64,000 nt of DNA from Octopus sinensis. Lineage: Eukaryota. The stretch covers positions 20,832,001-20,896,000 of the forward strand of contig NC_043018.1 in NCBI RefSeq assembly GCF_006345805.1, written 5' to 3'. Both the position numbers and the translations under genes were made by a program. Of the stretch, positions 21,699-63,892 are shown piece by piece. The first letter of the stretch is position 1; every line of letters begins with the position of its first letter. Below the pieces are notes generated by a model. That model was not told the origin of the DNA. It saw nothing but the letters and a program-made list of their open reading frames with translations, and did no database searches.

Positions 21699-21749
21699 AT
21701 GGCTGAGCGTTCACTAACATTAACCAGAACAGACTTGGAACTGTCCGAA
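21699..21749 (+). CDS. PPP1R11: PPP1R11 coding exon 1 (MAERSLTLTRTDLELSE)
   Basis: ATG in aaaATCATGG context, 17 codons, donor GAA|gtaaga in phase 0, matching exon 2. MAE-T/S-rich start resembles inhibitor-3 N-termini. Confidence 0.8.
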
Positions 21750-22389
21750 GTAAGAATCCATTCCTTCATTCTGTCTTTCTTCATTCTTTCATTCTTTCAT
21801 TCTGTATTCCTTTATTCCTTAGATTAAATCACGATTCTGCATTATATACGCCTTTGGTAAAACATGTAGGTATTGGTTTATAAGGCAGGCAGAGCTAAAG
21901 AATGCGAAGAATACGTACACACCACCCGTTTTAGGCAGAACCAAAACTCTAACCTAACCCCCGGGTGTACATATTCTTTACTTTCACCTGATATATATAT
22001 ATATATATATATATATATATATATAGAATGGTGGTGCTCCAGCATGGCCACAGTCTTTGGAGTGAAACATACAAAAGAATATATATATATATATATATAT
22101 ATATAAACAAGCAAGGTGACAAAGACATATCGCTATATATGGAAGAAAGTCTTTCCATATAGAGCCATTAATTTTACACACCTTCCAAAATTATACATAC
22201 ATGCATATATATATATATATGTATATACCTTCTCAATTATATATATATATATATATATATATAACGGGAAGCTTTATGAAAATAAACTAAAGACGAAGGC
22301 AGGTGGAATACAAACAAACAATTGTATTAGTATATATATATACCTTCCCAAATTATACATATATATATATGTGTGTGTGTGTGTATGTA

Positions 22390-23240
22390 TGTATAATTTG
22401 GGAAGGTATATACATATATATATGTATGTATGTATAATTTGGGAAGGTATATACATATATATATATGTATGTATAATTTGAGAAGGTATATACATATATA
22501 TATGTATGTATGTATAATTTGGGAAGGTATATACATATATATATGTATGTATAATTTGGGAAGGTATATACATATATATATGTATGTATGTATAATTTGG
22601 GAAGGTATATACATATATATATGTATGTATAATTTGGGAAGGTATATACATATATATATGTATGTATAATTTGGGAAGGTATATACATATATGTATGTAT
22701 GTATGTATAATTTGGGAAGATATATACATATATATATGTATGTATGTATAATTTGGGAAGGTATATACATATATATATGTATGTATAATTTTGGAAGGTA
22801 TATACATATATATATGTATGTATGTATAATTTGGGAAGGTATATACATATATGTATGTATGTATGTATAATTTGGGAAGATATATACATATATATATGTA
22901 TGTATGTATAATTTGGGAAGGTATATACATATATATATGTATGTATAATTTGGGAAGGTATATACATATATATATGTATGTATGTATAATTTGGGAAGGT
23001 ATATACATATATGTATGTATGTATGTATAATTTGGGAAGATATATACATATATATATGTATGTATGTATAATTTGGGAAGGTATATACATATATATATGT
23101 ATGTATAATTTTGGAAGGTATATACATATATGTATGTATGTATGTATAATTTGGGAAGATATATACATATATATATGTATGTATGTATAATTTGGGAAGG
23201 TATATACATATATATATGTATGTATAATTTTGGAAGGTGT
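22390..23240 (+). repeat. 36-40-bp minisatellite (TATAATTTGGGAAGGTATATACATATATATATGTATG[TATG]), about 22 copies
   Basis: Directly visible; flanked by inverted repeats of about 110 bp at 22088-22200 and 23215-23320. Confidence 0.95.
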
Positions 23241-24024
23241 GTAAAATTAATGGCTCTATATGGAAAGACTTCTTCCATATATAGTGATGTGATCTTTGTC
23301 ACCTTGCTTGTTTGTTTGTTTTGTTTTCTTCTTTCGTCATGACCAACACCTGAGAATGACTTTATGGATGAAGAGGTGGGAAAATGTGTTAATGGTTGGG
23401 AAGCAATGAGCTAGCATTAAAAAAAGCTACTTTAGAAACATTACTGCTGAAGGTTCGCAACATTAGCAGCAAATCCTTCGTTCTTTTATTATTATTAATA
23501 ATAATAGTATTGTTGTTATTATTATTATTATTATTATTATTATTATACTCTTCCTGTTCAGAGTTCAAATCCCACCTGGACCCACTTTGTTTTTAATCCT
23601 TAGGGAGTCGTTAATATGAAGTACCCAGTTCACCAAAAAAAAAAGCATCACTGGCCTTATCCCAAAATCTAAAACCATTACTATTATTATTATTATTATT
23701 ATTATTAATTATTAATTATTACATTTTGAGTTCAAATCTTGTCAAGGTTGATTGACTGCGCCTTTCGTCCTTTCTGAGTTTTATACAATTAAATAAATTA
23801 ACGGTCAATTACTGGACTCGATGAGACCGACCTAAATGTCTCCCTTCAAAAATAGCTGGCCTTATATGTCTAAATTAATTAAAAAAAACAGCCACTGTTA
23901 TCATTTTATTAAAAGTCCATTTTATTCTCATATCTGAACACATGCCGAGATTCTGGCTGTAACGAAACGACCACACATCAGAAGATTCCAGGTTCGCATC
24001 CTGGCAAACTCGTATCCATATATA

Positions 24025-24285
24025 TATATATATGTGTGTGTGTGTGTTTATGTTTTATGTTTTCCAGTTTCAGCTCTTGAGCTGTGGCCATGCTGGGGCA
24101 CCGCCATTTGTGTGTGTGTGTATATATATATGTGTGTGTGTGTATATATATGTGTGTGTGTGGATATATATATGTATATATATATATATATGTGTGTATG
24201 GATATATATATATATGTGTGTGTGTGTGTGTATATATATGTATATATGTGTGTGTGTGTATATATATATATATGTATATATATGC
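24025..24285. repeat. (TA)n/(TG)n microsatellite
   Basis: Directly visible. Confidence 0.9.
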
Positions 24286-25416
24286 ATTTGCTTAAATGGT
24301 GACACTGGAGATGTACTTTGATAAAATCAAATCTTTTTATTTATTTGAGAAAATATTTAATTTTGTTTTACTTCCAAATGTTTTTTTTTTTAATTTTTTT
24401 GTCCAATGTTTACATTCATCACTGTTGCTATTTATAAAAAAAAATACGCATTCGTTGATTTAGGCAAACTAAAACTTTATTCATTTTCCTAAATCTTTAT
24501 TTATTTATTAACAGATGATAATTTAATTTCTGCAAAAATAAAATTAAATTTAATATATTTCAATAATAAACATTAAAACGAAGTCGGCAAAGTCTTCGCC
24601 GTATATTTACGACATTTACCGATGAATAATTAATTTCCGTAAATGAGTGATTGAATGGCAGCATCAATCATCTGACAGTCAAGGGACATAAGTGAAGTCA
24701 AAGTGTGCTGCCTTACAAGGAATGGGTCATTCTCTCTGCTAGAAATAGCAGTAAGATCTAATTGAAGTCACATTTTATAGTCTTAAACAAGGAATGACAC
24801 ACTAGATATTGTAGCTGTAGATATGCTACGTCTTGAAATAAGACATGATTGTCACGGTTAGAACGGTGTAACACCGTTCTAACCGTGACAATGGCTAAAT
24901 AACTATAGTTGAGATTAAAGGCAAAGGACAACAGACTATTTTCAAAAATTCACCAAAATAACCAGCAATTCTGTTCAACCCCAGCTCAGGCCTCAGGGTC
25001 AAAAGTATTCGTGACTATCTTGTCTTTTTTTTTTTTTTTTTTTTTAAGGTTTGAGTGCAGGGTGATTTGGCTGCTGTTTCTAGAAGTTCAGGCGACCACA
25101 TGAGGCTCCATCGTTGGTTTTCGGCAACCGATGTAGAGCCAACAAGAATAGGTTTGGTGTTTAATTCCAGGGGAAAAAACTAAAACTATCAATAAATAGA
25201 TTTGTTGCATAAACCACCAGTGCGTCGAACAAAATTCTTGGCGACGTTTCTTCGAGCTTTTGGCATGTTCCAGATTCAAATTCCGTCCAGATCGACTTTG
25301 CATTTCTTCCTTTCGAGTTGAACATTGGGGTTCTGTATAATCGACCGAAACCATTATTCTATGCTAATTTAGTTACCCCTGGGTCACATTTGTGACTTCC
25401 GCTGAGTTCATTAATT

Positions 25417-61685: not shown

Positions 61686-61769
61686 CTGTAAGACAAAAAG
61701 AAGAAACAAAGTTAATCTCCATTTCTGTCAATGTTCATACACATTAGTACACACACACACACACGTATA

Positions 61770-62925
61770 TATTTCTTTATTACCCATCAGGGGCTAAACA
61801 CAGAGAGGACAAACAAGGACAGACAAACAGATTAAGTTGATTATATTGACCCCAGTGCATAACTGGTCCTTAATTTATCGACCCCAAAAGGATGAAAGGC
61901 AAAGTCGACCTCGGCGGAATTCGAACTCAGAACATAACGGCAGACGAAATACCTATTTCTTTATTACCCACAAGGGGCTAAACACAGAGAGGACAAACAA
62001 GGACAGACAAACAGATTAAGTTGATTATATTGACCCCAGTGCATAACTGGTCCTTAATTTATCGACCCCAAAAGGATGAAAGGCAAAGTCGACCTCAGCG
62101 GAATTTGAACTCAGAACGTAACGGCAGACGAAATACCTATTTCTTTACTACCCACAAGGGGCTAAACACAGGGGGGACAAACAAGGACAGACAAACGGAT
62201 TAAGTCAATTATATCGACCCCAGTGCGTAACTGGTCCTTAATTTATCGACCCCGAAAGGATGAAAGGCAAAGTGGACCTCGGCGGAATTTGAACTCAGAA
62301 CGCAGTGGCAGACGAAATACCGCTACGCATTTCGCCCGGCGTGCTAACGAGTCTGCCAGCTCGCCGCCTTGACACACACACATATATTATCATCATCACC
62401 ATTGTTTTAACATCCACTTTTCCATATTCACAGAACCCTAAATCACAAGGTTCCGAAACAAACTTCTTCACCACACATCCATGCCTGGGCCTATATATTA
62501 CCCTGTTTATAGGTGGCAAACTGGCAGAAACGTTAGCACGCCGGGCGAAATGCTTAGCAGTATTTCGTCTGTCGTTACGTTCTGAGTTCAAATTCCACCG
62601 AGGTCGACTTTGCCTTTCATCCTTTCGGGGTCGATAAATAAAGTACCAGTTTCGCACTGGGGTCAATGTAATCAACTTAGTCATTTTGTCTGTCCTTGTT
62701 TGTCCCCTCTGTGTTTAGCCCATTGTGGGTAGTAAAGAAATAGGTATTTCGTCTACGGCTACGTTCTGAGTTTAAATTCCGGCGAGCTAGACTTTGCCTT
62801 TCATCCTTTCGGGGTCGATAAATAAAGTACCAATTTCGCACTGGGGTCAATGTAATCGACTTAATCCTTTTGTCTGTCCTTGTTTGTCCCCTCTGTGTTT
62901 AGCCCCTTGTGGGCAGTAAAGAAAT
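61770..62925. mobile_element. Family B tandem arrays in opposite orientations (3 x 184 bp minus; about 2 units plus)
   Basis: 184-bp period seen directly (61837, 62021, 62205); inverted copies from about 62510. Confidence 0.85.
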
Positions 62926-63252
62926 ATATATATATATTACCCTGTGTGAAAAGGGTTTTCAGGACTGTATCATGTCCCAGTGTCTGCTTTGGCATGGTTT
63001 CTACAGCTGGATGCTCTTCTTGATGCCAACCACTTCACAGAGTGTACCGGGTGATTTTTTTTTGTGTTACCAACACGCGCATTCACACACACACACACAC
63101 ATACATGCACAAATGGGTTAGATAGGTGCTAGAGAAGGAGCAAAAAAAGCTCATGAAATATGGCATATACACTCATTACCTACAACAATGGTGTTTTTCA
63201 GTATGACCACAGCTTTAAAGCTGGAACAAGTTAAAGATTTTTAAATAAAAGT

Positions 63253-63660
63253 GCAGGTGTAGCTGTGTGGTAAGAAGCTTGCTTCCCAACCACATGGTTC
63301 GGGGTTCAGTCCCACTGCGTGGCACCTTGGGCAAGTGTCTTCTACTATAGCCTCGGGCCAACCAAAACTTTGTGAATGTATTTGGTAGACAGAAACTGAA
63401 AGAAGCCCGTCGTATATATGTGTATATATATATACATGTATGTTTGTGTATATGTTTGTGTGTCAATGTTTGTCCCCCCAACATCGCTTGACAATCGATG
63501 GTGGTGTGTTTGCATCCCCATAACTTAGCGGTTCGGCAAAAGAGACCGATAGAATAAGTACTAGGCTTACAAAGAATAAGTCCTAGGGTCGATTTCCTCG
63601 ACTAAAAAAGGTGGTGCTCCAGCATGGTCGCAGTCAAATGACTGAAACGAGTAAAAGAGT
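63253..63660 (+). mobile_element. Family A SINE
   Basis: Match to other copies. Confidence 0.85.
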
Positions 63661-63752
63661 ATAACAACCATGCTGGTTCCTTTTACATTACATAGAATAT
63701 ATTTTATACTTTCACAAATAATTATTCTGTAATGAAACTCAAAAGCATTTAC

Positions 63753-63892
63753 CTTGCTGCTGTTTTGTTTAGCGCTAATGCCACAGCCCACAATGCATCA
63801 TATGCAAGAGGAGATTCTGGGTATCCGGTGACTTGGCTTGTGTCAGAGACATTTAGCTTGGAGTCAAGACGTTCTTTATATCTTTGCGATGT
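63753..63892 (-). CDS. GABBR1: GABA-B receptor 1 exon (TSQRYKERLDSKLNVSDTSQVTGYPESPLAYDALWAVALALNKTAA)
   Basis: ttcag acceptor and AG|gtaaat donor; PLAYDA.WA.ALALNKT is the GABA-B Venus-flytrap motif. Confidence 0.95.

Follow-up and report, generated by a model that had tools for sequence, protein, structure and literature searches.

Why do two genes of the human major histocompatibility complex (MHC) lie tail to tail in an octopus? In the human MHC, GABBR1 belongs to the extended class I region and PPP1R11 to the class I region (PMC1309616). In the stretch of Octopus sinensis DNA analyzed here (64,000 nucleotides; NCBI RefSeq assembly GCF_006345805.1, contig NC_043018.1, positions 20,832,001 to 20,896,000; hereafter the window), PPP1R11 on the plus strand and GABBR1 on the minus strand are convergent, direct neighbors. 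Such an arrangement could be a remnant of an ancestral gene order or the product of a later encounter, and the answer differs with the scale of comparison. The linkage of the two genes on one chromosome is ancestral. Their contact is, with a probability of roughly 0.55, a secondary juxtaposition, brought about in the octopus or cephalopod lineage between genes of the same ancestral linkage group.

A convergent gene pair in Octopus

The stop codons of PPP1R11 and GABBR1 are separated by 4,590 bp (positions 35852-40441), and the only features of this interval are repeats resembling short interspersed elements (SINEs); it contains no gene. The original prediction, made from the sequence of the window, had described direct convergent neighbors with stops about 4.6 kb apart, and this description holds. 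The limits it gave for the pair are accurate as well, since the second ATG of PPP1R11 is at 21699 and the GABBR1 exon lying furthest upstream within the window begins with base 63892. The annotation of O. bimaculoides has the same arrangement: PPP1R11 is followed, on the opposite strand, by a gene for a 776-residue protein with ANF_receptor and 7tm_3 domains, and no gene is called between them. An assembly artefact as the source of the adjacency is ruled out, because the window is collinear with this independently assembled locus.

PPP1R11 consists of four coding exons (Table 1), with GT-AG at every junction, and encodes a product of 140 residues that scores 83.4 bits against Pfam PPI_Ypi1 (cut-off 27). 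A KVKW docking motif and the conserved segment CCCIYEKPR, as is typical for PPP1R11 (inhibitor-3), can be read directly in exons 2 and 3. Its identity is 99% with an Octopus vulgaris protein, over a 99-residue query, and ~89% with the proteins of O. bimaculoides; the closest matches among animals carry the name PPP1R11, and the gene is single-copy. The O. bimaculoides models begin at the second in-frame ATG, at 21699. The last exon is the sole GT-AG combination that gives the annotated O. vulgaris C-terminus, one residue difference aside. Relative to the deposited O. vulgaris protein P0084, the product has Asp for Asn at position 17 and Arg for His at position 119, differences that point to a separate individual or assembly, or to a sister species that is very close.

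GABBR1 runs through 12 exons, all bounded by GT-AG, from 63892 down to its TGA stop. The window holds the C-terminal two thirds of the receptor (583 residues), and the first ~308 residues are encoded beyond base 64000. The architecture is that of a class C G-protein-coupled receptor, a Venus-flytrap domain followed by 7tm_3: the 583 residues score 187 bits against Pfam 7tm_3 and 39 bits against the C-terminal part of ANF_receptor, and the full-length O. vulgaris protein (P0223) includes both domains. The C-terminal coiled coil, through which R1 heterodimerizes with R2, is present as well: residues 434-474 match 5gwm_A, a solved coiled-coil chain of GABA-B R1, and also align to the R1 chain of 9jr0, to its residue 763. 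Only the last part of the Venus-flytrap domain lies in the window, the N-terminal lobe being encoded outside it, and this part includes the E-x-P-L-A-Y-D stretch (PESPLAYD) with Glu and Asp present, two residues that presumably take part in ligand binding.

Assignment to the R1 subtype is supported by scores and by phylogeny. With R1 chains the octopus protein reaches 564 bits (the “Metabotropic GABA-B receptor subtype 1” chain of 9jr0, which we take to be from Drosophila) and ~490 bits (human GABBR1); with R2 chains it reaches only 312 bits (human GABBR2) and 283 bits (9jqx/9jr0). A neighbor-joining tree, rooted on a non-R1 paralogue of Owenia, covers R1-type proteins from molluscs, a brachiopod, an annelid, a nemertean, hemichordates and arthropods. 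In it the octopus protein groups with that of cuttlefish inside the mollusc R1 clade, and the clades largely match the species tree. Judged by its sequence, the minus-strand gene is the GABA-B R1 orthologue, and the identification that the original prediction wanted confirmed by phylogeny is thereby upheld.

The interval between the stop codons is collinear with its O. bimaculoides counterpart at 82-91% identity, and it probably contains the 3′ untranslated regions (UTRs) of both genes. The best-conserved non-coding block of the comparison (38524-39895; 90.8% over 1.4 kb) stands above the neighboring intergenic and intronic matches and lies 0.5-1.9 kb downstream of the GABBR1 stop; from its sequence and position it is probably a conserved 3′ UTR. 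The 776-residue O. bimaculoides GABBR1 model ends in a seven-codon mini-exon (QYFGSLN, then a stop), the true last exon being hidden there by an assembly gap (a run of N at 26806-29291 of that locus). The counterpart in the window reads QYFGSLS before its stop, with the AG acceptor conserved. This mini-exon may have arisen in annotation, or it may be a genuine alternative 3′ exon that overlaps the PPP1R11 3′ UTR. Its distance from the PPP1R11 stop in O. bimaculoides is 134 bp. This distance was rejected as evidence of abutting UTRs, since the annotated gene ranges are start-to-stop coding ranges and the model spans the assembly gap.

These features bear on the possibility that the pair, a PP1 regulator and a neuronal receptor gene, is functionally coupled, through 3′ UTRs that meet or overlap or through regulatory elements used in common, and is maintained by selection in cephalopods. 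PPP1R11 and the GABA-B receptor are not known to be functionally linked, though no search aimed at such a link was made. Coupling would fit the good conservation of the 4.6-kb interval in the two Octopus species compared, which reaches 91% at 38524-39895, and likewise the proximity of the mini-exon and the tight packing of the novel microsyntenies of coleoids (PMC9023564). However, the mini-exon model coincides with the gap over the real last exon and may be artefactual, and co-expression is reportedly lacking among the genes of novel microsyntenies in cephalopods (PMC9023564). Functional coupling is regarded as highly improbable.

Linkage at the scale of the chromosome

The two genes were taken to share a chromosome when, in chromosome-scale assemblies, the sequences that carry the two proteins have identical length. 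By this measure PPP1R11 and GABBR1 lie on one chromosome in all nine non-arthropod species with both genes on chromosome-scale sequence. These comprise the cephalopod O. vulgaris (50,826,567 bp), the bivalves Mya arenaria (56,306,838 bp), Dreissena polymorpha (111,411,237 bp), Mercenaria mercenaria (74,526,284 bp) and Mactra antiquata (32,142,164 bp), the protobranch bivalve Solemya velum (133,535,218 bp; locus tags 135 apart), the gastropod Gigantopelta aegis (91,665,651 bp), the nemertean Lineus longissimus (16,304,662 bp) and the hemichordate Glandiceps talaboti (25,083,287 bp). For Mya and Gigantopelta the shared chromosome is confirmed by the record names, CP111028.1 and CM027799.1. Genomes of this kind have about 11-20 chromosomes, and chance is therefore excluded as the source of the agreement. 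The chromosome-scale linkage of PPP1R11 and GABBR1 is ancestral.

The exceptions are found among arthropods. Ixodes hexagonus, Pectinophora, Prorops and Apolygus have PPP1R11 and GABBR1 on separate chromosomes or scaffolds, which fits the breaking up of linkage groups in this phylum. In the sand fly Lutzomyia both again lie on sequence of the same length, an observation that is uninformative because sand flies have very few chromosomes. In human both genes are on 6p, ~0.45-0.5 Mb apart.

This distribution decides against the view that the octopus pair is pure coincidence, that is, that the genes belonged to different ancestral linkage groups and became joined and adjacent only in cephalopods. 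The split in several arthropods could be read in its favor. Yet all nine non-arthropod species, across four phyla, have the genes on one chromosome, which contradicts it, and the co-location on human 6p also counts against it. The heavy reorganization of coleoid genomes, whose novel microsyntenies draw 71% of their single-copy genes from different scallop chromosomes (PMC9023564), makes such meetings conceivable in general. For this pair, an accidental meeting of different linkage groups is effectively excluded. The original prediction had named different ancestral linkage groups in outgroup molluscs and amphioxus as the finding that would speak against it; the outgroup molluscs, to which the comparison extended, instead have both genes on the same chromosome, and the nemertean and the hemichordate concur.

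Gene neighborhoods outside Octopus

At the scale of neighbors the picture is different. In Mya, PPP1R11 lies at 10.39 Mb and GABBR1 at 23.76-23.81 Mb, a separation of 13.4 Mb, and in Gigantopelta the respective positions are 3.89 and 49.46 Mb, a separation of 45.6 Mb. Exons of the partner gene are not detected by tblastn in the 10-kb flanks of PPP1R11 in Mya, Dreissena, Gigantopelta or Glandiceps. The neighbors that do occur within 10 kb are ZER1-like and COG8-like (Dor1) genes in Mya (at ~10.39 Mb), an ShK-domain gene in Dreissena, a gene of no named family in Gigantopelta, and a SHIPPO-repeat gene together with a gene for a TFIIS-type zinc-ribbon protein in Glandiceps. Human ZER1 lies at 9q34, one of the MHC paralogous regions, and the ZER1-like neighbor in Mya would fit the same linkage group.

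The adjacency is thus seen in Octopus only, in two species (the window and O. bimaculoides), and in none of the four non-cephalopod invertebrates compared. In the cuttlefish annotation the GABBR gene spans 152 kb and no neighbor is called within 10 kb. RefSeq XP numbers were considered as a proxy for distance and rejected, since 254 numbers correspond to 13.4 Mb in Mya and 1,988 to 45.6 Mb in Gigantopelta. The microsynteny comparison called for by the original prediction therefore yields separation in two outgroups and absence from the 10-kb flanks in two more. The two origins it had offered, ancestral remnant or coincidental re-association, are in this way divided between the scales: ancestry stands for the chromosome, where nine species agree, and is the less likely reading for the neighbors, which are seen to be adjacent in Octopus alone.

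The adjacency is likely secondary because of the separations of 13.4 and 45.6 Mb and its absence from the four non-cephalopod invertebrates. According to this model, PPP1R11 and GABBR1 would be ordinary single-copy genes, one housekeeping and one neuronal, of one bilaterian ancestral linkage group, and the ancestral chromosome would be the vertebrate source of that part of human chromosome 6 which bears the MHC, and of its paralogous regions. Linkage at the scale of the chromosome would have been inherited without the genes ever leaving their common chromosome, and a rearrangement within this chromosome, in the lineage of octopus, of coleoids or of cephalopods, would have placed them tail to tail. 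The resemblance to the mammalian framework of GABBR1, ZNRD1 and PPP1R11 would then be in part a coincidence. We infer both the direction of the change, gain in cephalopods as opposed to repeated loss elsewhere, and its timing.

POLR1H and the mammalian MHC class I framework

The zinc-ribbon gene beside PPP1R11 in Glandiceps encodes 128 residues of the TFIIS type, and one of its exons reads MATTSKKSVELAFRSDLEFCPTCGS. From the human protein, we take it to be the gene of RNA polymerase I subunit RPA12 (POLR1H/ZNRD1). On the Glandiceps record OZ203274.1, PPP1R11 occupies 10001-12163 on the plus strand and the POLR1H-like gene 15044-18347 on the minus strand, convergent with it and 2.9 kb downstream. 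ZNRD1 is the immediate neighbor of PPP1R11 in mammals in general, not only in the bat considered next. In Pteropus alecto the order is GABBR1, MOG, ZNRD1, PPP1R11, all within ~80 kb: GABBR1 is on the minus strand at 54.8-80.0 kb, ZNRD1 on the plus strand at 129.2-133.2 kb and PPP1R11 on the plus strand at 133.6-135.4 kb, with only ~53 kb from GABBR1 to PPP1R11 (PMC4753418). The case for ancient microsynteny looks stronger for the pair PPP1R11-POLR1H, common to bat and hemichordate, than for PPP1R11-GABBR1.

The original prediction had pointed to POLR1H/ZNRD1 as one of the genes to be sought in flanking windows. Within the 64-kb window, tblastn with the Glandiceps exons gives no match; nor does it give one in the other loci compared, Glandiceps excepted. 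Agreement with vertebrates therefore does not extend to orientation or accompanying genes, the bat genes being divergent with ZNRD1 between them and the octopus genes convergent, with no POLR1H in the window.

These comparisons bear on the principal alternative, in which a tight ancestral GABBR1/POLR1H/PPP1R11 block survives in octopus as well as in the MHC class I framework of vertebrates. This alternative would involve a local inversion and the loss or relocation of POLR1H in octopus, and independent breaks in bivalves, gastropods and perhaps hemichordates. Several observations speak for it: the compactness of the bat cluster (PMC4753418), the conservation of the octopus adjacency in two species, the shared chromosome in all non-arthropods compared, the low a priori chance of this particular re-association, and the PPP1R11-POLR1H adjacency of Glandiceps, which implies that part of the mammalian framework predates vertebrates. 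Against it stand the absence of the adjacency from four of four non-cephalopod invertebrates with the separations of 13.4 and 45.6 Mb, the convergent arrangement in octopus as opposed to the divergent one of mammals, and the lack of a POLR1H match in the window. Pairs kept by constraint since ancient times are normally seen in several slowly evolving lineages, and here the pair is seen in none of four. Octopus genomes keep less ancestral gene order than those of bivalves (PMC9023564), so that octopus would be an unexpected sole keeper, and the proto-MHC genes of amphioxus are dispersed (PMC13012124). Moreover, the pair was picked post hoc, and the more than 10,000 adjacent pairs of a genome would yield tens of such coincidences. 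Retention of an ancestral block is on balance less probable than secondary juxtaposition. The more specific proposal that the bilaterian ancestor had a compact GABBR1/POLR1H/PPP1R11 block, of which octopus preserves one junction and hemichordates another, is less likely than not.

Other considerations lower the confidence placed in secondary juxtaposition. Once vertebrate-only genes are ignored, GABBR1, ZNRD1 and PPP1R11 are consecutive in mammals, which is closer than the original prediction had supposed. If the octopus neighbor of PPP1R11 is treated as a random draw from the ~430 genes of the shared linkage group (gene count from PMC13012124), the chance that it is one of the nearest ancient mammalian neighbors is, as a rough estimate, ~1%. 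The separations were measured in two outgroups only, Mya and Gigantopelta, and within cephalopods the context of the gene pair comes from Octopus only. Gene order decays in every lineage, so that finding the genes far apart in one clam and one snail is no proof of how the ancestor had them.

Features of the window

The window is AT-rich nuclear DNA with many microsatellites and SINE-like repeats; scans of all 64 kb for Rfam families and tRNAs give zero matches. Table 1 lists the exons of the two genes together with the repeats. The SINE-like repeat, ~300-400 bp long, is present in many copies and both orientations and also occurs in the O. bimaculoides locus. Its translations recur among the open reading frames, for example PRCHAVGLNPEPCGW, with no match to tRNAs or Rfam. 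Fragments of a non-LTR (long terminal repeat) retrotransposon combine a reverse transcriptase (Pfam RVT_1, 72 bits) with a following PHD-type zinc finger, and both copies contain stops and frameshifts.

Table 1. Coordinates of exons and repeats in the O. sinensis window (positions of the window unless a locus is named).
Feature	Coordinates	Strand	Remarks
PPP1R11 coding exon 1	21684-21749	+	MKPKIMAERSLTLTRTDLELSE; tblastn with P0084/P0086; GTAAGA donor after exon
PPP1R11 coding exon 2	30694-30802	+	RVxF-type PP1-docking motif (KVKW) and most of Ypi1 domain
PPP1R11 coding exon 3	32070-32204	+	acidic, Cys/His-rich tail
PPP1R11 last coding exon	35739-35851	+	TAG stop 35849-35851
GABBR1, four exons	63892-63753, 61685-61580, 60506-60443, 59193-59116	-	C-terminal part of Venus-flytrap domain (ANF_receptor)
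GABBR1, six exons	56043-55893, 53604-53472, 51296-51189, 49627-49423, 47333-47206, 45756-45628	-	seven-transmembrane domain
GABBR1 exon	43438-43578	-	start of C-terminal coiled coil (REEEERYQRLLAENEEIKKAIAQ)
GABBR1 last coding exon	40442-40810	-	end of coiled coil and C-terminal tail, ...ELDPFC; TGA stop 40442-40444
Mini-exon of the O. bimaculoides GABBR1 model	36016-36039; O. bimaculoides locus 23603-23626	-	
Retrotransposon copy	57473-58391	-	in GABBR1 intron
Retrotransposon copy	16062-16650	-	upstream of PPP1R11
Minisatellite	22382-23225		PPP1R11 intron 1; 41-bp unit, ~21 copies
Minisatellite	49823-50170		GABBR1 intron; 37-bp unit, 9.4 copies, 99% identity
Repeated 184-bp unit	61770-62321, 62560-62926		
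SINE-like copies (examples)	1046-1488, 18368-19692, 35132-35540, 38136-38530, 43740-44118, 44465-44809, 51797-52252, 63242-63664		

Significance and comparison with known systems

The pair illustrates two scales of synteny. Membership of a chromosome is very stable across animals, even for genes of the human MHC, and the identity of the neighbors is not; cephalopods are builders of many new neighbor relations. If the adjacency were ancestral, part of the MHC class I framework would predate vertebrates and be more than 550 million years old, in conflict with the conclusion drawn from amphioxus that the compaction of the MHC is a vertebrate event (PMC13012124). If it is derived, which is judged likelier, it is one more tight pair of the coleoid type, with no bearing on immunity. 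No statement on a PPP1R11-GABBR1 pair in invertebrates was found in the literature on microsynteny, the proto-MHC and linkage groups, and the supplementary files of Schmidbaur 2022 (PMC9023564) that were searched name neither gene.

Four known systems invite comparison. With the mammalian MHC class I framework (GABBR1, MOG, ZNRD1, PPP1R11, RNF39; PMC4753418) the octopus locus shares the closeness of the same two orthologues, both unrelated to antigen presentation. In that framework, however, GABBR1 is divergent from ZNRD1 and PPP1R11, with ZNRD1 between, whereas the octopus pair is convergent and has no class I genes with it. The PPP1R11-POLR1H pair is likewise a neighbor relation of PPP1R11 inside the class I framework, but it is shared by mammals and a hemichordate and is not present in the octopus window.

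The bilaterian linkage groups and the proto-MHC chromosome (Simakov 2022, PMC8809688; Asymmetron, PMC13012124) resemble the present case in that orthologues of MHC-region genes share a chromosome across phyla. The amphioxus orthologues of 55 genes from the human MHC locus share a single chromosome, which corresponds to human chromosomes 1, 6, 9 and 19; they are scattered along it, and compaction followed the split from vertebrates (PMC13012124). Such groups conserve membership and not order, so that the amphioxus genes are dispersed whereas the octopus pair touches, and the octopus pair is placed in one of them, provisionally, by the shared chromosome.

A further parallel is with the microsyntenies of coleoids (Schmidbaur 2022, PMC9023564), of which 505 are lineage-specific and reported as tightly packed; among the single-copy genes of 232 coleoid blocks, 71% lie on different scallop chromosomes and 29% do not (PMC9023564). 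Like these, the PPP1R11-GABBR1 pair is tight, with a short intergenic distance conserved between octopus species, is absent from the non-cephalopod molluscs examined, and is made of old genes, not new ones. The published blocks differ in comprising at least three genes shared by Euprymna and octopus, whereas here there are two genes, known as a pair from Octopus alone. The locus does not represent a new kind of feature. It exemplifies known phenomena, ordinary macrosynteny combined with a lineage-specific gene pair.

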